DNA of 64,000 bases, taken from sequence record OR699282.2; one strand, written 5' to 3'. Every line of letters starts with the position of its first letter. The first letter of the stretch is position 1. Under the pieces are notes generated by a model. The model made no database searches. It saw only the letters and a program-made list of their open reading frames with translations, and was not told the origin of the DNA. Shown here piece after piece: positions 9,396 through 60,753 of the stretch. A program made the position numbers and the translations under genes.

Positions 9396-9400
9396 TTAAT

Positions 9401-9610
9401 ATGCTTACTGTACAGGATAAGATCGACATCTTAAAGGTTAATATGTATGTGATTGATGCAGTACCTGGTAAAGTATTTGCATACGATGACACTACTGTAA
9501 GCAATTTCTACTATAGCCAGGACGTGGGGGATCTTTCTGTACAGTCGGTTATTGAAAACGTAGTTAATGCAGCGTATGAGCATTTACTTTCAAATAGTAC
9601 TTGCAATTAG
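9401..9610 (+). CDS. hypothetical protein
   Basis: Follows 9123 closely. Confidence 0.7.
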   Translation: MLTVQDKIDILKVNMYVIDAVPGKVFAYDDTTVSNFYYSQDVGDLSVQSVIENVVNAAYEHLLSNSTCN

Positions 9611-9679
9611 TTTTTAAACGCGTATAATGTTTTACATGAAGGGGAGAAATGATTCTCCCCACTAATTAAGGAATATGAA

Positions 9680-9826
9680 ATGAAAGCATCAAAAAAGAGT
9701 AATACTAAGAAAGCACGTTCAACCTTAGATGGGGTATTCCCTTTACGTTTCGTTGATGAAGTAGTTTCCTACCCGCCGGGCCTTACTCCTGAGATGGTAG
9801 AAAGTTTGCGTAAATCTAAAAAATAG
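9680..9826 (+). CDS. small basic protein, 48 aa
   Basis: Promoter 9601, SD AAGGA. Confidence 0.65.
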   Translation: MKASKKSNTKKARSTLDGVFPLRFVDEVVSYPPGLTPEMVESLRKSKK

Positions 9827-9908
9827 TACTTGCAATTAGTTTTTAGTACTGTATAATAGTTTACATGAAGGGGAAAACGTTCCCCTTACACCTAACGAGG
9901 AAAGTATA

Positions 9909-10160
9909 ATGGAAACAATTTTAATCAAAGACACTGCTACTACTGTAACTTATGATAATGATTGCATTATCCCAGGGACTGAGTACGGCGAACGTGTACC
10001 CGTTCAAGTAGAGATTGATACCACATACATCGACAAGGCTGACCAGTGTATCACTATTGTAATTGGTGAATATCGTTTTCTACCAGAAGAGATCCAAAAA
10101 TGGCAGAATATGATTGACCGTGCGAAATTAGTCGCACAAAGTTTAAAATACAAAGTTTAA
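9909..10160 (+). CDS. hypothetical early protein
   Basis: Promoter 9830, SD GAGG. Confidence 0.8.
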   Translation: METILIKDTATTVTYDNDCIIPGTEYGERVPVQVEIDTTYIDKADQCITIVIGEYRFLPEEIQKWQNMIDRAKLVAQSLKYKV

Positions 10161-10246
10161 AATAATACTTGCAATTAGTTTTTAGTACTGTATAATGTTT
10201 TACATGAAGGGGAGAAATGATTCTCCCCAATAACAGGAGAAACAAA

Positions 10247-10399
10247 ATGAAACAATACAACGCTCGGTTTGATGTTACTATCGGTAACGGCAAAGGTCAA
10301 TTCTCTTTCAGTACTCGCCGCAGTTATACAGAAAACTTCCTGCGTAATTGTGCACTGACCGCCGCTCAAATTAAACATTATTTTCAGGCTAAAAAATGA
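10247..10399 (+). CDS. small hypothetical protein
   Basis: Promoter 10169, SD AGGAG. Confidence 0.7.
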   Translation: MKQYNARFDVTIGNGKGQFSFSTRRSYTENFLRNCALTAAQIKHYFQAKK

Positions 10400-10485
10400 G
10401 ATCATTAGCTTATTACAGTTCGGCCCTGGTCGGTGCATTGATCGCGGCGTTGTTAGTAACCTATCTATTCTTTATGGTGATTTAA
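10396..10485 (+). CDS. small membrane peptide, 29 aa
   Basis: ATGA overlap, single hydrophobic stretch. Confidence 0.5.
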   Translation: MRSLAYYSSALVGALIAALLVTYLFFMVI

Positions 10486-10629
10486 ATGAATCCAACAGGT
10501 TTAAACTATAAAAGTTGTTCGGCATTTACGAAAGCAAATAAAGCGAATGCACGTAAAGCGAAAGTACAGGAATACATCAAGCAAGGCATGACGCGAAAGG
10601 CGGCGATTCTAAAAGCTAAAAATAAATGA
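10486..10629 (+). CDS. small basic protein, 47 aa
   Basis: Abuts the previous stop; Lys/Ala-rich. Confidence 0.55.
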   Translation: MNPTGLNYKSCSAFTKANKANARKAKVQEYIKQGMTRKAAILKAKNK

Positions 10630-10638
10630 AAAAAGTGG

Positions 10639-10745
10639 TTGACTCCGGTCAGCCATTTTGCTATTATATATTCATTGAGAGATAGCTCACTAGCCCACAG
10701 GGTGCAGGAGTGTATCTATTGTATAATGTTTGAGTACTGAAAACT
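10639..10745 (+). ncRNA. candidate small RNA cassette copy 7
   Basis: TTGACT-17-TATTAT, TGAG-AGATAG-CTCA hairpin, core AGCCCACAGGGTGC 10692-10705. Confidence 0.5.
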
Positions 10746-10850
10746 ATTTTAAAGTATTTGATAAAAAGTACTTGCAAACTATCTCAATAAGCGTATAATG
10801 TTTTACATCGCAAGGGGAAACGGTTTCCCCTAGTAATAAGGAAACGAATC

Positions 10851-11192: not shown

Positions 11193-11287
11193 TATAAAAA
11201 AATAGTTTGACAATAGATTATAGTACTGTATAATAGTTTACATCAAGGGGAGAATAGTTCTCCCCACTAACAGAGAGAGAAAACAAA

Positions 11288-11500
11288 ATGGCTAATATCC
11301 GGTCGAAATTAAAAAATGCAAAACAAGTTTTATTTTCAGATCATGAATACTTTAATAAAGATATTACAGGAGTTACAAGTATCAAGGAAGTAAAAGAAAA
11401 AACCGGCGTTTTGTGTGATGTGCGATTAGTTGGAACATTTGGGAATAACGTGCTATATCGCTGCGGTGATTACAATTTTACACTGACTATCATTAACTAA
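11288..11500 (+). CDS. hypothetical early protein
   Basis: Promoter 11207. Confidence 0.75.
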   Translation: MANIRSKLKNAKQVLFSDHEYFNKDITGVTSIKEVKEKTGVLCDVRLVGTFGNNVLYRCGDYNFTLTIIN

Positions 11501-11582
11501 AAATATTATCACAGTACTATTGACATAGTTTGATAGTACTGACATAATAACTTTTATCAACTACACTACTAAGGAATTAAAA

Positions 11583-11762
11583 ATGGCTATCATCGCAAAA
11601 ACTGAAATCATCGGCCTGGATTCTATCATCATGACGTTTGAAGATCAAAAAGGTATGTATGTGGTTTCCTATGGTGATTATGTTCGGGAGTATGAAACGG
11701 TAGACGAAGCCTTTGAAAGTTACATTCGCCAGGTGAATAAAGCATACGACGACTACCGCTAA
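11583..11762 (+). CDS. hypothetical protein, 59 aa
   Basis: Promoter 11520, SD AAGGA. Confidence 0.75.
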   Translation: MAIIAKTEIIGLDSIIMTFEDQKGMYVVSYGDYVREYETVDEAFESYIRQVNKAYDDYR

Positions 11763-11861
11763 AATATATTACCAGTACTATTAAATCTATTGACAATGTT
11801 TGATAGTACTGTATAATAAGTTTTATCAACAGTAGTTAACTTAACCTAAGAGAGAAACAAA

Positions 11862-12005
11862 ATGATCGCACTGGATTCATTCATCGACGCAGTACTGGCA
11901 AAAACTGGCGAGGATCTGACCGCAGAACAATACGCAATGATCGAGCAATGCCAGCAAGACGGTAAATCGGTGAAAGATACTGTTAAGATTATCCGCAAGA
12001 TGTAA
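11862..12005 (+). CDS. hypothetical protein, 47 aa
   Basis: Promoter 11790, terminator follows. Confidence 0.7.
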   Translation: MIALDSFIDAVLAKTGEDLTAEQYAMIEQCQQDGKSVKDTVKIIRKM

Positions 12006-12011
12006 GATTAT

Positions 12012-12039
12012 AGCCCACTGGTTAACGCTGGTGGGCTTT
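12012..12039 (+). terminator. intrinsic terminator containing a Chi site
   Basis: AGCCCAC..GTGGGCT-TT; GCTGGTGG at 12027. Confidence 0.65.
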
Positions 12040-12110
12040 AATTCATTACCCTATACAATGCCAGTACTAAACCGTTTATCTCGTTAGAATGCGTTACAGG
12101 ACGTTTAACA

Positions 12111-12308
12111 ATGATTAGCATGAAATCAGTACAAAAACAAATAGAAACATTATCAAAAATTAAACGTAAACAGTACTCCTTAGAATATACAATCAATGGT
12201 AACTATCATCTAATGAAAGAAAATAATTTTATAGTCATTGATGAATCATTGCAAATCATTAGTATAGTACTGAAAGCATTAATCAATGACAGAAAAAAAT
12301 TAAAATAA
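12111..12308 (+). CDS. hypothetical protein
   Basis: ORF track. Confidence 0.6.
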   Translation: MISMKSVQKQIETLSKIKRKQYSLEYTINGNYHLMKENNFIVIDESLQIISIVLKALINDRKKLK

Positions 12309-12312
12309 ACTA

Positions 12313-12395
12313 TTGACAATATCATCCAGTACTGGCATAATACTTACATCAAGACGAGAACGTCACTAACCCATAGGGTGCACAAATGTAACTGT
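12313..12395 (+). ncRNA. candidate small RNA cassette copy 8
   Basis: TTGACA-17-CATAAT, GAC-GAGAAC-GTC hairpin, core AACCCATAGGGTGC 12368-12381. Confidence 0.5.
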
Positions 12396-12639
12396 ATAAT
12401 ATTGATCAAAAAATGATCTGATCAATACTTGATCAATTTGCGTAAAGTAGTATAATTCTATGCAGTTGGTTAGACGAAAGGTTATGATTAGTAGTGCAAG
12501 TGTATAAAAATTTTCATGGTGTATCGTTCCGCACATATGGGGATGAATATGTGGTATCATGTGGATTGGAAAAAGTAAGAACAAGTAATATTATTGTCGC
12601 ATTACAGTACTATAGTATTTTTATAATGAGGTTAAAATA

Positions 12640-12897
12640 ATGGCTGTAGGATTCGCGAAAGATGGGGCCGAACAAGACGAGATTAACGCAGTGATTCAGG
12701 CTGCCGTTAACCACGCTAGAAAGCAAATTAACGCACAAATAGAATCACTGATACATTGCCTCGACTGCGGCGATATAATCCCTGAGAAACGACGCCAGGC
12801 CGTTAAGGGATGTAAGTACTGCATAACTTGCCAGGAGGATCATGATAGTACTTTTAAACGTCCCCCGCGTAATTGTTGGCATAGATCTATGAGATAA
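12640..12897 (+). CDS. TraR/DksA C4-type zinc finger protein (YbiI-like)
   Basis: MAVGFAKDGAEQDEI N-terminus with acidic tip, CxxCG-x-IPExRRxA-x3-CxxCxxCQ. Confidence 0.9.
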   Translation: MAVGFAKDGAEQDEINAVIQAAVNHARKQINAQIESLIHCLDCGDIIPEKRRQAVKGCKYCITCQEDHDSTFKRPPRNCWHRSMR

Positions 12898-12961
12898 AAA
12901 GTAATTGACAGTACTGAAAGATAGTGTATAATGTTTTATATCTTAACTGAGGATAGTAATC

Positions 12962-20977: not shown

Positions 20978-21045
20978 GCGTTACACATCACCAAACATCA
21001 TAGGCCGCTCTCTAGCGGCCTTAACTATATCAGGAGTACATACAC

Positions 21046-21255
21046 ATGATCTATACAGTATACAGCGTCCTAGGCACTATTGCAGGCGTACATGATAACG
21101 TCGATAGTGCTATGCGTACAGTACTGCAACAGGTTCCACTAAAGCCTAAGACCATTAAGCAGATGACAGCACGACTAACCAGGGCGACCGATGGCGTGGA
21201 AGTATGGCAGGACTACGGGGATACACAGATAATCGTTAGCGTAACGAAGGATTAA
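21046..21255 (+). CDS. hypothetical protein
   Basis: SD AGGAG. Confidence 0.75.
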   Translation: MIYTVYSVLGTIAGVHDNVDSAMRTVLQQVPLKPKTIKQMTARLTRATDGVEVWQDYGDTQIIVSVTKD

Positions 21256-21505
21256 TGCGTAAAGGGATCTAGTACTGATTCAGAAAAAAGTCAAGGCGTT
21301 TTTTAAATTATGCGTTAAAAAAATGCATAGGTAATCCCTTGACTTTTTTGAAATAAAAGGGATTGGACTATGGCAAAATGCGTAGGGGGCTAAAGGGCGG
21401 GTAACCTTTAGCGACTTCGATAAAGGGGTATTACGAATAAAATGTTATTGATTTTTTATACGAATCGTATATTATAGGATTGATATTATTTTTAATGGAG
21501 TCCCT

Positions 21506-21703
21506 ATGCGTATTTTAACTAAAGAACAGCACCACGAAAGACTTATCAATAACATGGCTATGATAATGTATAAGTCCCATGACCGTGGTATTGCCTATAA
21601 GCGTGAATTAATTATGGCACTATTCATTGGAACTAACTTTCAGGAAAGGTATGTCAACGATTGGATTTGGTATTTAATTGAAGATATAACGAGTAAACTA
21701 TGA
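21506..21703 (+). CDS. family A (LGTxYQE) mini-protein
   Basis: FIGTNFQE. Confidence 0.8.
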   Translation: MRILTKEQHHERLINNMAMIMYKSHDRGIAYKRELIMALFIGTNFQERYVNDWIWYLIEDITSKL

Positions 21704-21900
21704 AAATGCGTATTTTAAATAAAGAAGAATATCAATCACTGTTACGTAAAAACTTCACAAAGATTTATAATACAGACACACACGTAGAACGAATGGAGTT
21801 ATACCTTTTGATTACTTTGGGAACTAACTATCAGGAAAGATGGGTGATTCAATATATGGATACATTGAAAAATAAAATATTGTCCACGAGGAAACAATGA
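21700..21900 (+). CDS. family A mini-protein
   Basis: TLGTNYQE. Confidence 0.8.
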   Translation: MKMRILNKEEYQSLLRKNFTKIYNTDTHVERMELYLLITLGTNYQERWVIQYMDTLKNKILSTRKQ

Positions 21901-22106
21901 AAACTATAACACGAACCCAATCATACGGTCTTATCTTGAAATACATGGACTTAATGGTGGATATCAGCAAAGACCTTCCTAAAACTGAAATTGAAGTTGC
22001 AAGAGCAGAGATCCGCATGTTGGCTGTACTGAACACAAACCATCAGGAAGATTATGTTGAAGAATGGATTCGATTTTTAATAGAAGATATTAAGAGTAAA
22101 CTATGA
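21897..22106 (+). CDS. family A mini-protein
   Basis: VLNTNHQE. Confidence 0.8.
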   Translation: MKTITRTQSYGLILKYMDLMVDISKDLPKTEIEVARAEIRMLAVLNTNHQEDYVEEWIRFLIEDIKSKL

Positions 22107-22318
22107 TTATTATAGAAAACTCATATCAATATACTGAACGCATCGCTGCCAGACAACTTGAAATCCTCATAATATACGAAGAGACTTCTGATTTAAACTT
22201 AGCCGAGGTATTGGAAAATGATATACTATTGGGTGCATTCTTAGGAACAGACTATCAGAAGTATTATGAGGAAAAGTATTTGTCATCTCTTGAGAAATAT
22301 ATCAGGAGCAAATTATGA
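22103..22318 (+). CDS. family A mini-protein
   Basis: FLGTDYQK. Confidence 0.8.
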   Translation: MIIIENSYQYTERIAARQLEILIIYEETSDLNLAEVLENDILLGAFLGTDYQKYYEEKYLSSLEKYIRSKL

Positions 22319-22527
22319 TTTTTTTAACACCAGAAGAATATAAGAAACGTTTCAATTCCGCACAGGGTGAAATCTTACTTATATACCTTTCAAATGCAGA
22401 CCTTAACTTATCAAGGGTATTAGAAAAAGATTTACTTATGGGTGCATTCCTTGATACAGACTTTCAGGTGTATTATGTAGGGGAATACTTAATTGCACTT
22501 CAGAATTATATCAGGAGTAAACTATGA
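22315..22527 (+). CDS. family A mini-protein
   Basis: FLDTDFQV. Confidence 0.8.
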   Translation: MIFLTPEEYKKRFNSAQGEILLIYLSNADLNLSRVLEKDLLMGAFLDTDFQVYYVGEYLIALQNYIRSKL

Positions 22528-22742
22528 AACATTTAAGTAACTCCGAGAAGAATAAAATTATCGTTGCTGCAATAAACAAATATTTTACACTTCCTCACAC
22601 AGAAGGTTTATGTGTAAGGGAACACAGGATAAACACCACCGATATACGCATGATGGCTGTACTGGGGACGAACTTTCAGGAAGAGTATGTTGTTGCACAC
22701 ATAGTTGCCCTCACTGATCTAATAAGGGACAAATGTAAATGA
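22524..22742 (+). CDS. family A mini-protein
   Basis: VLGTNFQE. Confidence 0.8.
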   Translation: MKHLSNSEKNKIIVAAINKYFTLPHTEGLCVREHRINTTDIRMMAVLGTNFQEEYVVAHIVALTDLIRDKCK

Positions 22743-22996
22743 AACACTTAACTGATGATGAATTTGAAACTATAATTCGTAAACTAACCCCCATCACAAG
22801 GATAGTCTACGGTGACCCCAGCCTTACATGGAACCAAATGCGAGCTAAAGTTAATGAGCTATGGTTGCTGTACTTTATGGGGACTCAATATCAAGATAAG
22901 TTTTGCACAGAATATATCGAACAATTAACGAATGTTATACAGGATAAACTAGATGATTATTTGCTCACAAAACATGAAGACTTTATCAGGAGTTGA
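22739..22996 (+). CDS. family A mini-protein
   Basis: FMGTQYQD. Confidence 0.8.
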   Translation: MKHLTDDEFETIIRKLTPITRIVYGDPSLTWNQMRAKVNELWLLYFMGTQYQDKFCTEYIEQLTNVIQDKLDDYLLTKHEDFIRS

Positions 22997-24845: not shown

Positions 24846-25093
24846 ATGCGATGAATATTGTGAATAACATCAGATTAGCAGAAAGATTTGATAGAATTGG
24901 GGAAGCACTGAGAAGATACGATAAAGAATATGGTCATTTGAGCTTTTCTATAGAAAAGAGATATGAACTTGAAGCAGAGTTTAAAATGCAGAGTCTCTTA
25001 GGCACACAGTATCAAAACCAATATATTCAAACTTGGATTGATTGTTTAATCCAGACAATTTACGTAAGAAACATTAAATGCAAAATGAAATGA
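24842..25093 (+). CDS. family A mini-protein
   Basis: LLGTQYQN. Confidence 0.8.
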   Translation: MNAMNIVNNIRLAERFDRIGEALRRYDKEYGHLSFSIEKRYELEAEFKMQSLLGTQYQNQYIQTWIDCLIQTIYVRNIKCKMK

Positions 25094-25332
25094 TATACTT
25101 AACACATGATGAGTTAACAGAAAGACTAGATAAATCCAAAAGACTTACAAATAAACTTCCTCACAACACAAATCAAACCCCAGCAGAAAGGAGTGCAGAA
25201 GTTTTATTCCAAAGATTACCATACCTTCTTGGAACTGATAGGCAAGAGTATCACATTGAACGTATAATTAAATATCTCAAAATTACTATTAAGGAAAAAG
25301 TAAATGCAAATGAAATACTTAACAGACGATGA
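25078..25332 (+). CDS. family A mini-protein
   Basis: LLGTDRQE; close paralog of the next gene. Confidence 0.8.
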   Translation: MQNEMIYLTHDELTERLDKSKRLTNKLPHNTNQTPAERSAEVLFQRLPYLLGTDRQEYHIERIIKYLKITIKEKVNANEILNRR

Positions 25333-25555
25333 GTTAAAAGAACGACTAATTAAATCCAGAAAACTTACAAATCAACTTCCAAACGACACAAACAAGTCAC
25401 ATGCCGAAAGGAGTGCAGAAGTTTTATACATTCAACTCATGTACTTTCTTGGCACTGACAGACAAGAGTATTACATTGAAAGTATGCTTCGATATCTTAA
25501 ATTCTCTATAAAGGAAAAGATACATGCTCAAGAATTTAAAAATCCTAACAGTTAA
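25304..25555 (+). CDS. family A mini-protein
   Basis: FLGTDRQE. Confidence 0.8.
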   Translation: MQMKYLTDDELKERLIKSRKLTNQLPNDTNKSHAERSAEVLYIQLMYFLGTDRQEYYIESMLRYLKFSIKEKIHAQEFKNPNS

Positions 25556-25766
25556 TGAATATCATACGATTGTAATGAAAACTAATAGTGCAATTTCTAA
25601 AAAATCAAACCCCAAGTACATACTGGAACACACATTTGAAGAACGTCAATTAGCTTTAGTTGAAGCAAAACTTCTTGCACTCCTAGGAACAAACTATCAA
25701 GAAGAATACATCAGAAAACTAATATACCTTTTAACTAAACATATAAGAAAAAGAAAAAATGCATGA
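25524..25766 (+). CDS. family A mini-protein
   Basis: LLGTNYQE. Confidence 0.8.
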   Translation: MLKNLKILTVNEYHTIVMKTNSAISKKSNPKYILEHTFEERQLALVEAKLLALLGTNYQEEYIRKLIYLLTKHIRKRKNA

Positions 25767-25993
25767 AACACTTGACAGATGATGAACATGGGCTTATAGT
25801 AATGGATGTAATCAACATCGAATACAAAAAGTTGATACGCTACCGTTGTTATGAAGATAAGCAACTCGTTCTAGCAGAACAGAAGTTGTTTCGACTCTTA
25901 AACACAAACTTCCAAGCACAATACGAAGAATCGTATATGTACCTTTTGGCGAGGAAAGCAAAAAGAGATTATGAAAATTTTAAGCAAAGGTGA
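25763..25993 (+). CDS. family A mini-protein
   Basis: LLNTNFQA. Confidence 0.8.
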   Translation: MKHLTDDEHGLIVMDVINIEYKKLIRYRCYEDKQLVLAEQKLFRLLNTNFQAQYEESYMYLLARKAKRDYENFKQR

Positions 25994-26186
25994 TTCAGTA
26001 ATATTACTTATAGAGAGTTCAAGTAAATTCTTAAACATAACACTGTCTGATATAGATGAAGATGACAAAGAAGTACTGAGAGCAGATTTAAGAGTACTGT
26101 TACATATCGGAACAAACCTACAAGAAGAATATGTAGAGTGCTACATCAATGAACTTAAAGAATTAGTACTGAGAACATGCAAATGA
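25971..26186 (+). CDS. family A mini-protein
   Basis: HIGTNLQE. Confidence 0.8.
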   Translation: MKILSKGDSVILLIESSSKFLNITLSDIDEDDKEVLRADLRVLLHIGTNLQEEYVECYINELKELVLRTCK

Positions 26187-26419
26187 AAATCCTTTCACCA
26201 AGTGAATACCACGAACTATTAAGTAGTTTAATTCTAAAATTGTATATAGCAAAGACCACAGATTTACCTGATGAAGAAAAAAATATTCTAATGAGTGAAA
26301 TCTATGTTAATTCTACCCTAGGGACTAACTATCAAGAATGTAATATTAATGATTACATCAAAGAACTAAAAAGGTTTATCCAATGCAAATGCGAATCATT
26401 ACCGAAACAGAATACCTAA
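26177..26419 (+). CDS. family A mini-protein
   Basis: TLGTNYQE. Confidence 0.8.
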   Translation: MQMKILSPSEYHELLSSLILKLYIAKTTDLPDEEKNILMSEIYVNSTLGTNYQECNINDYIKELKRFIQCKCESLPKQNT

Positions 26420-26625
26420 CAATCATAAATGGACTGTTTTTGAAGTTATTTGCCATTAACACATCAAAACTACCAGATACTGATAAAATTATTAAGTTAA
26501 ATGAAATCTATGTTCAAGCTACACTGGGAACTAACTATCAAGAAGCCAATGTGTATAATTACATTAATACACTCAAAAGGGTAATAAAATTAAAATGCAC
26601 AAACAGCCAATACACAAACCACTAG
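26383..26625 (+). CDS. family A mini-protein
   Basis: TLGTNYQE. Confidence 0.8.
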   Translation: MQMRIITETEYLTIINGLFLKLFAINTSKLPDTDKIIKLNEIYVQATLGTNYQEANVYNYINTLKRVIKLKCTNSQYTNH

Positions 26626-26825
26626 GAACAGCAGAATACATTGAACTCATGGCATTACACTTCTCATCCTTTCAGAAACTTAGGCGAGAATCAAAGAATG
26701 ATTTAGAATATACCATCAGAGGTTCCGATTTAAGAATGCTTCTCACCCTAGACACAGATTCCCAAGAGCGATTTGTCAATGAGCATATTAGAGCACTTTT
26801 AATGGAAATTCAAAGTAAACTATGA
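26595..26825 (+). CDS. family A mini-protein
   Basis: TLDTDSQE. Confidence 0.8.
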   Translation: MHKQPIHKPLGTAEYIELMALHFSSFQKLRRESKNDLEYTIRGSDLRMLLTLDTDSQERFVNEHIRALLMEIQSKL

Positions 26826-27037
26826 AGATAATATCAAACCAAGAGTACTTGGCACTATTCAGGAAGAATAATCACAAATATATGGCACTTGATTCAAGAA
26901 CTGATATAAGTGAACTTGAAAAAAATCTTTTGCGTTCAGATATGATAGTACTGACACTCTTAGGAACACAGCATCAAGAGAGAACTGTTAATTCACACAT
27001 AGGGATTCTTATGCAGATAGTACAGGAAAAGATATGA
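26822..27037 (+). CDS. family A mini-protein
   Basis: LLGTQHQE. Confidence 0.8.
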   Translation: MKIISNQEYLALFRKNNHKYMALDSRTDISELEKNLLRSDMIVLTLLGTQHQERTVNSHIGILMQIVQEKI

Positions 27038-27255
27038 GAATCATAACACAACAAGATATTCTTAAGTTCACAAGGGTTCATGCATCTGAATTTGATGCTA
27101 TATTATCAAAAAGTTACAACAACCCTTATACACAAGATGTACATTACAGTGAATTATGGATGTATATACTTTTAGGTACAAATAAGCAAGAGCAAGCCGT
27201 ACAGAAGTATTTGACAGCTTTACGTGATGCTACTGCTAATGGAGTACATGTTTAA
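27034..27255 (+). CDS. family A mini-protein
   Basis: LLGTNKQE. Confidence 0.8.
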   Translation: MRIITQQDILKFTRVHASEFDAILSKSYNNPYTQDVHYSELWMYILLGTNKQEQAVQKYLTALRDATANGVHV

Positions 27256-57817: not shown

Positions 57818-57887
57818 TAAAAATATTGTGAACATATTAAATCTTTATGATATAATGTTCACATCTTTTTTGATAATGGAGATATAG

Positions 57888-58629: not shown

Positions 58630-58681
58630 TAAACCAAAGGACGGGATATAATATCTCGTCTTTTTTTTTGTCTGGAGATAT

Positions 58682-59530
58682 ATGAAACTTTATCTAATCG
58701 TTGACTACAGTAAGGGTTATTATGACTACGCAGAAGAATCTGAAGGGTATTGCTCGTCTACTAATGTCAATGTACGCACCAGTAGTACACATGAGCATGA
58801 ATCTATTACAAACCTAAAAGATTTCATCGCATATCGAGCATTTGAAAAGAATTTCTGTCGTAGTAGATATTCGAAGTTTGAGTACCCGTTAATTGATGTT
58901 CCTGATGAATTGATGTTCCAGTTAATGCTCACTGGAGTACAAGATTATGATTACATCGCGTACAATCACATTACTAAGAAAATTTATATCGGTACGTCAA
59001 CACATGACATTTCTATGTATGCATCATGCCCCGATGATCGAATGAATGATAGAAAATCATACTATAGTGGATCAGTTGGTTCAAATGATTCATTAAATAA
59101 AAATTTATTCTTTGAGTACGAGTTTGATAATCATCGAGGGAAAAAAGACCGAGAAGATTATTGTACTGAAATTGATAGTACCAATGGATATGAAGAAGTG
59201 AAAGAAGCGATAATGCCATATATCCTTGACAAGTACTACAAAGATTTTCAGTACTGTAGTAATTTTCTAATCCGAAATTCTATCATAATCGGTCGTCAAA
59301 GTACTGCATTCTCTAAGTACTACAATGATTCCCCTGTTGCTGAAAATGAAAACTGTAATATTCTCTCAATCCCACGTGAAGATATGGTATTCATGTTCAC
59401 ATCTTTCATTGAAGATGATGAGTTGTATGTAAAAAACAAGCACAGGTTCATGCCAAGTAAGATTGAGGTTATGAGAAGCTTAAGTGCAGATATCTTAACT
59501 AATTTCACTGAAAAAACAGAATACAACTGA
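58682..59530 (+). CDS. hypothetical protein with an N-terminal family B-like motif
   Basis: DVPDELMFQLML. Confidence 0.8.
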   Translation: MKLYLIVDYSKGYYDYAEESEGYCSSTNVNVRTSSTHEHESITNLKDFIAYRAFEKNFCRSRYSKFEYPLIDVPDELMFQLMLTGVQDYDYIAYNHITKKIYIGTSTHDISMYASCPDDRMNDRKSYYSGSVGSNDSLNKNLFFEYEFDNHRGKKDREDYCTEIDSTNGYEEVKEAIMPYILDKYYKDFQYCSNFLIRNSIIIGRQSTAFSKYYNDSPVAENENCNILSIPREDMVFMFTSFIEDDELYVKNKHRFMPSKIEVMRSLSADILTNFTEKTEYN

Positions 59531-59558
59531 GACATACCATAAGTTTATGATATAATGT

Positions 59559-59594
59559 AAGGTGACAGCAGAATATGTTGTCGCCTTTTTTTTT
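59559..59594 (+). terminator. intrinsic terminator
   Basis: AAGGTGACAGCA-GAATA-TGTTGTCGCCTT then a T-run. Confidence 0.8.
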
Positions 59595-59597
59595 AAT

Positions 59598-60177
59598 CCT
59601 GAAAGGTTCCATATGGAAATGATTAAAGCCTAATCCACTCGAAAAGTAGAGGGTAGATGAGTAGTCCTTTCAGTACGAACAGCAAATGAAACCCGTTAGA
59701 TGATGGCATAGTTTGAACCACTCACGGCAATGCGGCTGTATAAAGAACTCCAATAGGATAAAGAGAGTTCCTCGATAGACATATAAGGATCGCACCTTAC
59801 CAATTATCTAAGGGAGATTTCATGAGAAATTTGCGGTCGTAATTTATACAAAATAGTTGCGTCCAAAATTCGTGAAATCAAATACAAGTACTGGTCATAT
59901 GGTATTTGTATTATGTGTCGGGATGTTTAAGACCGACGACCGTTGCTACAAGAACCGCGATAGAGAGAAACAGAGCAACCCGCTTTCGTCTCGTAAGAGA
60001 ATTCGTGATATGAACTATGTGAAGGCCACCAGCGTCAAACTTTTTTGTTCTTTCCCCTGCGGGGGGATGAAATATGCTCAAGCAAACCCCGTCAATATTA
60101 ATTAAAAGAAAATAGTACTTGTAGAATTAGACATGCGTAGCATGGTAATTCTACTGATGTTGATGGAATCAACGTCA
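59598..60177 (+). ncRNA. candidate large structured non-coding RNA, about 580 nt
   Basis: At least 12 nested or adjacent stems, GNRA and UNCG loops, higher GC, no credible ORF; strand inferred from tetraloops and G-U pairs. Confidence 0.55.
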
Positions 60178-60207
60178 CGTATATTCATTGATGTTTCCAT
60201 AGGAATA

Positions 60208-60753
60208 ATGATGGCATTTATTAGAAAACAAAAAACTTTTACCTATAAGACTTTGGATTTTGTTGATTGTGAAAACCAATTACAAGATGAAGATAACTTT
60301 ACAGGATTTGTTGTTATTAAAGAAAAAGGATGCATTTCGTATATAAAGGAATTACAGAACGGCATTGAAGTTACTTCAGTCAAATTACTTCCTACACAAA
60401 AACCAACAATATTAAAAGCACAGTATGGTAATTATTTCGAGGAAAGATATAGTAATAATTTAATAAGTGTTAAGGCTCATATTATAAAAGGAGAACTAGA
60501 AGGAGAATATAGAAAATACAACCCACAAGGAAAATGTGTTTGGGTTAAATACTTCAATTCAGGAAATGATGTAACATCTGAAATAATTGAGTTTTTAGGT
60601 TTAACATGTACCCCTGAAACTCTTCATGATTACAAATTTAATACTGAAGAAGAGTTTAATCTGATGATGCGTTATGGTTCACATTTTAAATTTTTATATG
60701 AATATAACATTGACAGTAGTACTTTTGATAAGATAGTACAGAACTGTCTCTAA
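60208..60753 (+). CDS. hypothetical protein with a MORN-like segment
   Basis: KGELEGEYRKYNPQGKCVWVKYFNSG; start moved behind AGGA. Confidence 0.7.
   Translation: MMAFIRKQKTFTYKTLDFVDCENQLQDEDNFTGFVVIKEKGCISYIKELQNGIEVTSVKLLPTQKPTILKAQYGNYFEERYSNNLISVKAHIIKGELEGEYRKYNPQGKCVWVKYFNSGNDVTSEIIEFLGLTCTPETLHDYKFNTEEEFNLMMRYGSHFKFLYEYNIDSSTFDKIVQNCL

Follow-up and report, generated by a model that had tools for sequence, protein, structure and literature searches.

The stretch of DNA analysed here (the window, 64,000 nucleotides) comprises positions 1-64,000 of the genome of Escherichia phage BAU.Micro_ELP-22 (OR699282.2; Asteriusvirus, 373 kb, 121Q/PBECO4 group). On its plus strand, from about 59,563, the predicted transcription start, to about 60,100, it contains the gene of a large structured RNA of roughly 480-540 nucleotides (nt) that is under strong purifying and compensatory selection. 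It is well supported that this RNA represents a new family, with no detectable relative among the described families. As a whole, the findings are best explained by a stand-alone gene for a trans-acting folded RNA, a platform of the type of the ROOL and GOLLD RNAs, that would serve in conflicts among phages, mobile elements and hosts; we put the probability of this reading at about 0.8.

A large, ornate non-coding RNA unlike known families had been proposed at 59,598-60,177 in an original prediction made from the sequence alone. The strong plus-strand covariation, the absence of any match in Rfam 15 and the lack of a conserved open reading frame (ORF) bear this proposal out in substance. Its extent holds in part: the RNA is found in this interval, but the conserved RNA runs from about 59,563 to about 60,100. 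Similarity between genera stops near 60,100 (nhmmer envelope 59,525-60,111), which places two of the proposed hairpins, TAGAATTA/TAATTCTA and GATGTTGA/TCAACGTC (60,126-60,177), outside the RNA.

The locus is flanked by plus-strand ORFs at 58,682-59,530 and 60,211-60,753 and, as predicted, no conserved ORF lies between them. Also in agreement with the prediction, the G+C content is higher in the RNA stretch (0.38-0.455) than in the flanks (0.28-0.35). In the block at 59,639-60,100, Asteriusvirus and GAP32-like phages share 71-75% identity over about 460 nt. No other DNA in its 9-kb neighbourhood comes close to this conservation between genera; elsewhere similarity is confined to short patches of 65-68%. 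Compensatory changes, strand asymmetry, a promoter of its own and the lack of a conserved ORF, the general marks of a structured non-coding RNA gene, are all present.

GenBank places five minus-strand hypothetical proteins of 32-56 amino acids in the gap (ELP22_0173 to ELP22_0177, window 59,505-60,200), and the stretch could be read as coding for them, or as a non-functional spacer with chance stems. The folding of the single sequence does surpass that of dinucleotide shuffles, as the prediction had required, by a margin (z = -3.1 on the plus strand, -2.2 on the minus strand) that is only moderate and, taken alone, is weak evidence. We give such a reading practically no credence. A conserved protein-coding signal, named beforehand as an observation that would speak against an RNA, was sought among 48 homologues, and no conserved ORF was found: the longest ORFs vary in strand, frame, position and start codon. 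The five annotated proteins overlying the RNA are almost certainly spurious. The conservation of the region relative to its surroundings argues in the same direction, and the covariation statistics exclude chance.

The fold was derived from alignments of about 60 copies, 48-54 of them distinct and full length, with a mean pairwise identity of 67%. The copies were gathered by pattern scans of IMG/VR followed by nhmmer, and the pseudoknots were scored with purpose-written scripts. The result, backed by compensatory changes, is an RNA with 17 helices or more and, in addition, five pairings of the pseudoknot or loop-strand type (P1/P4, PK2, PK3, PK4 and PKL). Mutual information with average-product correction, computed over 93,096 column pairs, ranks pairs of the proposed helices in all of the top 15 places and in 20 of the top 30. 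Helices P3, P4, P5a/b, P7, P8, P9 and P11-P15, as well as PK2, PK3, PK4 and PKL, each score above 300 of 300 column shuffles and above controls with slid partners. The nested helices also emerge from RNAalifold, where 21 of 33 and 16 of 28 pairs show changes on both sides.

The 3' domain gives the clearest numbers. Among 50 distinct sequences, 98.5% of the cells hold a standard pair, compared with 76.3% after shuffling (none of 500 shuffles as high) and 35-54% with slid partners. The covariation score is 0.664, compared with 0.231 for shuffles (again none of 500 as high) and 0.055-0.131 for slid partners, and a covariance model of this domain finds all 59 of the 59 copies searched. The G-U pairs (211) outnumber the A-C combinations (72), and the folded strand is therefore the plus strand. 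The joining strands between helices are strongly conserved as well. Taken together, the covariation is overwhelming and specific to the plus strand.

The elements of the fold are listed in Table 1 with the other features of the locus. P1 lies in a poorly aligned region and was for this reason tested sequence by sequence; 43 of 47 sequences have an 8-bp helix at the same position, and eight compensatory versions of it occur. The 3-bp helix P4 occurs as GUA/UAC, GCA/UGC, GCU/AGC and GAA/UUC. Its loop is the 3' arm of P1, and the two helices therefore form a pseudoknot (PK1). The 5' domain (59,599-59,676) also holds a conserved GAUGAG. Further downstream, the joining strands of the P5a/P5b/P6 region (59,679-59,739) are highly conserved, and a three-pair long-range helix, PK3, crosses P5a. 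PK3 is canonical in all of 48 sequences (GC 36 and AU 12 at one position, UA 46 and CG 2 at another), its AUG/CAU changing to ACA/UGU or AUA/UAU, and it ranks 31st of the 93,096 column pairs. PK4 joins the P7 loop to a strand next to the invariant UAAGGGAG; each of 14 representatives has 4-6 complementary bases there, in sequences that differ considerably by lineage, and the pairing ranks 34th and 85th.

P9 encloses a hairpin module (59,838-59,869) with conserved UACAA and CGUCCAAAAUU. This module is absent from paralogue C, and in paralogue group B a second copy lies inside P15 (L003 ~2690-2740); it looks like a movable peripheral module. Its hairpin P10 and the P2 hairpin, both named in the original prediction, are present in copy A. 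They fall in poorly aligned stretches with mixed fractions of canonical pairs, and a hairpin is present at each place in the copies read by eye. In the 3' domain (59,881-60,014), which contains the invariant CGACCGUU, PK2 is canonical throughout and reads GUCAU/AUGAC in paralogue D. The seven-base pairing PKL is canonical in 99-100% of cases and covaries at 5 positions; three or four sequence codes exist in total, fixed within paralogue groups across genera.

Most stems of the original prediction are right. P1 (CTGAAAGG/CCTTTCAG), P7, P9 (ATTTCATGA/TCGTGAAAT), P11 (AATACAAGTAC/GTATTTGTATT), P12 and P15 covary among 48-59 homologues and are part of the fold. The same holds for the pairing of GTTGC with GCAAC within the predicted stem GTTGCT/AGCAAC, which is in fact the pseudoknot PK2. 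A stem between TAGATGA and TTATCTA is contradicted by the homologues: at five of its seven positions it is canonical in only 2-40% of the sequences (2%, 16%, 20%, 40%, 30% and 34%), and only one position, an invariant G-U, pairs. The suggested pseudoknot GCGGTCG/CGACCGT fails likewise, its middle being canonical in only 16-66%. The real pseudoknots and the promoter at 59,528-59,556 had been missed.

Table 1. Features of the RNA gene, its promoter, its fold and its other copies. Coordinates refer to the window unless a record or locus is named; L numbers are our labels for loci.
Feature	Coordinates	Strand	Description
Structured RNA gene	59,528-60,100	+	conserved block 59,599-60,095
Promoter (sigma-70, extended -10)	59,528-59,556	+	-35-like TGAGACA 59,528-59,534; extended -10 TGATATAAT 59,548-59,556
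Hairpin and nine-T run	59,559-59,595	+	terminator scan: 12 pairs, then T run
P1	59,599-606 with 59,666-673	+	CTGAAAGG/CCTTTCAG
P2 hairpin	59,607-618	+	TTCC-ATAT-GGAA
P3	59,630-656	+	conserved loop GAAAA(U)GUA; covariation
P4	59,661-663 with 59,674-676	+	100% paired; middle pair UA/AU/CG; rank 6th of 93,096
P5a	59,679-683 with 59,735-739	+	100% paired; both-side changes at 3 positions
P5b	59,693-696 with 59,724-727	+	100% paired; both-side changes at 1 position
P6 hairpin	~59,699-723	+	third pair cycles UA, GC, CG, AU
PK3	59,730-732 (AUG) with 59,780-782 (CAU)	+	three-pair long-range helix; crosses P5a
P7 hairpin	59,745-750 with 59,765-770	+	GAACTC/GAGTTC; all six pairs covary
PK4	59,756-761 (P7 loop) with 59,804-809	+	directly 5' of invariant UAAGGGAG
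P8 hairpin	59,784-788 with 59,795-799	+	beats shuffles
P9	59,816-825 with 59,870-879	+	ATTTCATGA/TCGTGAAAT; six outer pairs all covary; encloses P10
P10	59,838-844 with 59,855-861	+	CGTAATT/AGTTGCG; peripheral module
P11	59,881-891 with 59,902-912	+	AATACAAGTAC/GTATTTGTATT; covaries
PKL	59,894-900 (P11 loop) with 60,008-014	+	seven bases; partner strand just after P13
P12	59,917-921 with 59,933-937	+	GTCGG/CCGAC
PK2	59,942-946 with 59,975-979 (inside P14 loop)	+	GUUGC/GCAAC; 100% canonical
P13	59,956-960 with 60,003-007	+	3' domain
P14	59,963-967 with 59,983-987	+	3' domain
P15	59,989-992 with 59,997-60,000	+	TCTC-GTAA-GAGA
Conserved 3' tail	60,015-60,100	+	sequence conserved in phage and bacterial copies
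P16 hairpin (weak)	60,021-036	+	3' tail
First CGUCA(A/G)	60,033-038	+	3' tail
U-run	60,041-046	+	3' tail
C4-UGCG-G4 hairpin	60,054-065	+	conserved, invariant
Second CGUCA(A/G)	60,090-095	+	3' tail
Paralogue B	OR699282.2 115,254-115,868 (L003 2254-2868)	+	own extended -10 promoter
Paralogue C	OR699282.2 195,820-196,401 (L229 4007-4582)	+	own extended -10 promoter
Paralogue D	OR699282.2 307,912-308,438 (L255 1913-2439)	+	own extended -10 promoter
Bacterial copy	L245 3688-4262		Serratia fonticola NZ_CP183218.1; single copy
Bacterial copy	L247 2481-3130		Enterobacter chinensis; single copy
Bacterial copies	L241-L244, L246		single copy each
E. coli copy	L254 13,891-14,547		LR-29-1 NZ_AP027515.1; ffs-linked island

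The 3' tail differs in character from the covarying body of the RNA. Its C4-UGCG-G4 hairpin is invariant, and covariation thus neither supports nor refutes it. Two alternative tail pairings, P17b and P18, cannot be told apart for the same reason, both being invariant. In about half of the paralogues a terminator-like hairpin with a U-run is inserted after the first CGUCA motif, and there is none in copy A, the copy of the window. The two CGUCA(A/G) motifs change in parallel by lineage (GG 36, AA 11), as do the upstream positions 60,029 and 60,087 (UU 41, CC 7). Since the motifs change in parallel and are not mutually complementary, this pattern suggests that one trans-acting factor reads both.

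These features raise the possibility of a ribozyme, in which the multi-pseudoknot core would be catalytic and would cut its own 3' region at the CGUCA(A/G) sites, or another RNA. In the conservation of unpaired nucleotides and the density of pseudoknots the RNA equals large ribozymes. Two near-identical motifs that co-vary in parallel flank a variable insert, the terminator-like hairpin, and the GAUGA...GAA that frames P4 is reminiscent of the tandem G-A extension of stem II in the hammerhead. We nevertheless regard catalysis as unlikely. No ribozyme family of Rfam 15 matches even at permissive thresholds, and the parallel covariation of the CGUCA motifs follows lineages and is equally well explained by a shared trans factor. 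A hammerhead-like core was rejected, as sequence inspection shows that C3 and U4 are not kept, the helix arrangement does not fit and no hammerhead model of Rfam matches.

The RNA has a promoter of its own. A scan scored the extended -10 promoter 10 out of 12, with the TG, and the transcription start is predicted from the sequence near 59,562-59,565. Nearly every copy is preceded by TGnTATAAT (TATACT in some bacterial copies) with TGRRAC upstream at a fixed distance, and the bacterial copies read by eye are also preceded by an extended -10 promoter. Similar promoters stand ahead of ordinary genes at 57,848 and 44,788, which identifies this promoter as the type that the phage uses with the host polymerase. 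The hairpin at 59,559-59,595 probably serves the preceding gene (58,682-59,530) as an intrinsic terminator. With just 3-4 nt between the -10 element and the start of this hairpin, transcripts initiated at the RNA's own promoter would miss the base of the stem and would escape termination. A terminator at this place is specific to paralogue group A; the group A copies of other genera (L130, L201, L188) have a hairpin and U-run of different sequence at the same position.

In groups B and D, and for some group A copies too, promoter, folded domain, terminator-like hairpin with U-run and same-strand genes succeed one another. This is the layout of a cis-acting leader, riboswitch-, T-box- or put-like, that would control read-through of the terminator into downstream genes. 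The tail hairpin is followed by CUCAACAAAU, which may be boxA-like. Such a role is very unlikely. Copy C sits between minus-strand genes (endonuclease VII and a baseplate operon), and the bacterial copies are followed by a repressor or ParB-like operon that runs towards them; with a convergent gene as its neighbour, the RNA is not a leader. This applies to copy C in all genera and to four bacterial copies (L245, L247 and, judged from the gene layout, L241 and L242), which leave nothing to regulate in cis. In addition, the terminator hairpin is self-contained, variable in sequence and missing in half of the copies, and the downstream genes have their own promoters and are unrelated between paralogue groups. 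A riboswitch or attenuator leader was rejected on these grounds. Promoters of the next genes were found further downstream of the RNA tail.

A blastn search with the gap sequence finds the RNA in 62 jumbo-phage records, at 4-5 separate places in each, and a search with a bacterial copy as query finds 71 phage records, now including 10 Klebsiella phages; the environmental spread is under-sampled. The phages infect Escherichia, Salmonella, Erwinia, Yersinia, Xanthomonas, Serratia, Cronobacter, Pectobacterium and Klebsiella. BAU.Micro_ELP-22 itself carries four diverged paralogues, all on the plus strand, at 59.6 (A), 115.3 (B), 195.8 (C) and 307.9 kb (D), and the complete genomes of GAP32, CBB, BF and fHe-Yen9-04 carry four dispersed copies each. 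The paralogue groups are orthologous across genera, occupy syntenic positions and diverged anciently. Group A always lies 5' of the genes for a protein of about 175 amino acids and a Dam-type methylase.

Some observations concern the surroundings of the other copies. Copy D lies directly 3' of an RNA polymerase sigma factor gene, and GenBank covers paralogues B, C and D with tiny hypothetical ORFs. Judged by motif and tblastn only, a gene whose product starts with GLAVGDA(L/V)G, a motif typical of ADP-ribosylglycohydrolases, is next or next but one after the group B copy in L053, L212, L092, L142 and L176, and a homologue lies 4 kb from the RNA in the bacterial locus L242.

Four or five dispersed, promoter-driven, same-strand elements per genome, with runs of G and C in the tail, in phages annotated with T4-like replication genes, could also be transcripts of replication origins, priming at R-loops as ColE1 RNA II or T4 oriF/oriG do. 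We consider this highly improbable. The five covarying pseudoknots and the G-U asymmetry indicate a folded free RNA and not a hybrid, the cumulative GC skew shows no shift at the RNA locus, and the RNA is found singly in small bacterial islands and at the ends of prophages.

A pattern scan of bacterial assemblies revealed seven loci with full-length, more divergent homologues (236-276 bits), including the complete chromosome of Serratia fonticola GTA-SR07, Enterobacter chinensis, Serratia sp. 2723, Enterobacteriaceae RIT714 and a Buttiauxella metagenome-assembled genome. The bacterial copies, one per locus, occupy cargo positions at the ends of integrative prophage-like elements, adjoin a large serine recombinase or a tyrosine integrase, and usually face a CI-type repressor (HTH_3 + Peptidase_S24) or a ParB-like operon. 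At two of the loci the RNA is the last element before chromosomal genes (rof-tilS and the thi operon with its thiamine pyrophosphate riboswitch). Of 5,426 complete E. coli genomes, 2 carry the RNA, within an ffs-linked island of about 10 kb that also has the candidate defence systems PDC-M45 and PDC-S16. A search of a plasmid collection found no copy.

A protein of 257-286 amino acids is encoded near four bacterial copies (L241 5039-5899, L247 127-987, L243 7312-7986 and L254 15,259-16,032). It has no known domain, matching only phrog_20749 (function unknown), and no homologue in the jumbo-phage DNA examined.

As the original prediction had recommended, cmscan was run with Rfam 15, and the whole window gave no match at gathering thresholds. 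At the RNA locus, E values up to 10 yielded no credible match, and neither ROOL nor GOLLD; for seven other paralogue loci the search at E up to 1 was likewise empty, as it was at gathering thresholds for ten more, bacterial ones included. Membership in ROOL (RF03087) or GOLLD was rejected, since no search returned either family. Group I and group II introns were rejected because the intron models of Rfam give no match with E values up to 10, and the copies are intergenic with their own promoters. RNase P RNA and transfer-messenger RNA (tmRNA) were rejected for want of an Rfam match, and ARAGORN detects neither a transfer RNA (tRNA) nor a tmRNA in the 64-kb window; the prediction had rightly set aside tmRNA, RNase P and group I. 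The RNA may share some short words with the M1 RNA of E. coli.

Searches of the literature on structured RNAs of jumbo phages yielded no description of this family, and only the non-coding RNAs of PA5oct turned up. This distantly related jumbo phage has four non-coding loci defined by RNA-seq, two of whose RNAs (236 and 451 nt) rank with the most abundant transcripts of the phage, and it depends on the host RNA polymerase (Lood et al. 2020, PMC7318152). Homology to its ncRNA001 and ncRNA002 was rejected: searches of PA5oct 7.5-23.5 kb (L227) with nhmmer (E up to 10) and with covariance model R1 returned nothing, and no motifs shared with these two RNAs were seen by eye.

The closest parallels in organisation are ROOL and GOLLD, ornate RNAs of large size from phages and prophages, which assemble into nanocages made of RNA only. 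Their loop-junction pairings had first been seen as covariation and were later shown to bridge molecules (Kretsch et al. 2025, PMC12286853). Like them, the jumbo-phage RNA is large (about 0.5 kb), has many helices and pseudoknots, resides in phages and prophage-like carriers, forms its own transcription unit without a conserved partner protein gene, contains covarying loop-to-junction pairings and has no known function. In contrast, it matches them neither in sequence nor in structure, does not lie beside tRNA genes or tRNA islands, where they are frequently located, and occurs in 4-5 diverged paralogues per genome. The hosts differ as well, jumbo phages of Enterobacterales and Xanthomonas here as opposed to Lactobacillales, rumen and marine settings for ROOL and GOLLD. 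ROOL and GOLLD form homo-oligomers held by kissing loops and A-minor bridges; what is shown for the present RNA is the covarying loop-strand pairings PKL and PK4. A further precedent for PKL as a possible bridge is the pRNA of phi29, which has no similarity to the jumbo-phage RNA. In pRNA, a single-copy RNA of about 170 nt in the packaging motor of small Bacillus phages, a covarying loop-loop pairing is intermolecular and builds a ring.

Combining these lines, we propose the following scheme. The unmodified host RNA polymerase would transcribe the RNA immediately after infection, or constitutively from an island. The RNA would then act in trans as a folded machine, neither messenger nor leader, and its distribution points to a role in the conflict among phages, mobile elements and host. 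Our best guess is a pre-organised binding or assembly platform as in ROOL and GOLLD, in which, by analogy, a covarying loop-strand pairing such as PKL or PK4, or more than one, may connect separate molecules. Alternatively, the RNA might hold or sequester a host or phage factor. This mechanism, platform or sequestration, is the least certain step of the scheme.

Several points weigh against a trans-acting platform RNA. The start, end and abundance of the transcripts are inferred. The computed pairings fit intra- and intermolecular contacts alike, and PKL does not distinguish all paralogues of a genome, since groups C and D have the same sequence there. No conserved gene for a partner protein lies beside the RNA, and a comparison of the neighbouring proteins with Pfam, NCBIfam, PHROGs and PADLOC found no RNA-related partner. 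With ARAGORN, tRNAs appear in only 1 of 38 loci holding a copy, and not adjacent to the RNA. In the 3' tail, covariation shows no excess over shuffles, and in half of the paralogues the tail lies beyond the terminator-like hairpin, which leaves the 3' end of the mature RNA ambiguous. Lastly, a role in defence or counter-defence is suggested by the genomic neighbourhood only.

A more specific version, which we consider rather improbable, is an RNA-only quaternary assembly unrelated to ROOL and GOLLD, with subunits paired through their PKL codes. Homo- or hetero-oligomers would form early in infection, and copies at prophage ends or in islands would co-assemble with the RNAs of an incoming phage and poison them, a dominant-negative defence. 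The bacterial and island copies do carry a phage-type PKL code (AUUGUAU in the E. coli island).

Very few large RNAs of bacteria and phages have a comparable tertiary organisation: ribosomal RNA, RNase P, group I and II introns, OLE, GOLLD, ROOL, HEARO and raiA. Each such known class has opened new biology or structural principles. The present family, first recognised in a single window, was then confirmed in about 60 copies, with covariation support on a par with these classes, and GenBank leaves it unannotated or under spurious tiny ORFs. A whole clade of jumbo phages, some members of which are considered for therapy and biocontrol, retains four or five diverged copies, and bacterial mobile elements have captured the RNA at sites where defence genes gather. 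The system is tractable: Asteriusvirus Sharanji infects E. coli K-12 MG1655, the size of the RNA suits cryo-electron microscopy, and the covarying pseudoknots allow tests by compensatory mutation.

The locus is not, as had been claimed, the largest gene-free stretch after 21 kb. In a scan for ORFs of at least 90 amino acids, longer stretches without one are 24,846-27,223 and 20,978-22,952, as well as 11,193-12,961 and 9,396-10,850. These four may contain small genes or other non-coding features; Rfam at gathering thresholds returned nothing in them. Upstream of the RNA, a second TGATATAAT promoter of the same type stands at 57,848-57,856, with TGAACA upstream, and a clean intrinsic terminator lies at 58,636-58,664 between small genes. 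Both are ordinary punctuation of the early region.

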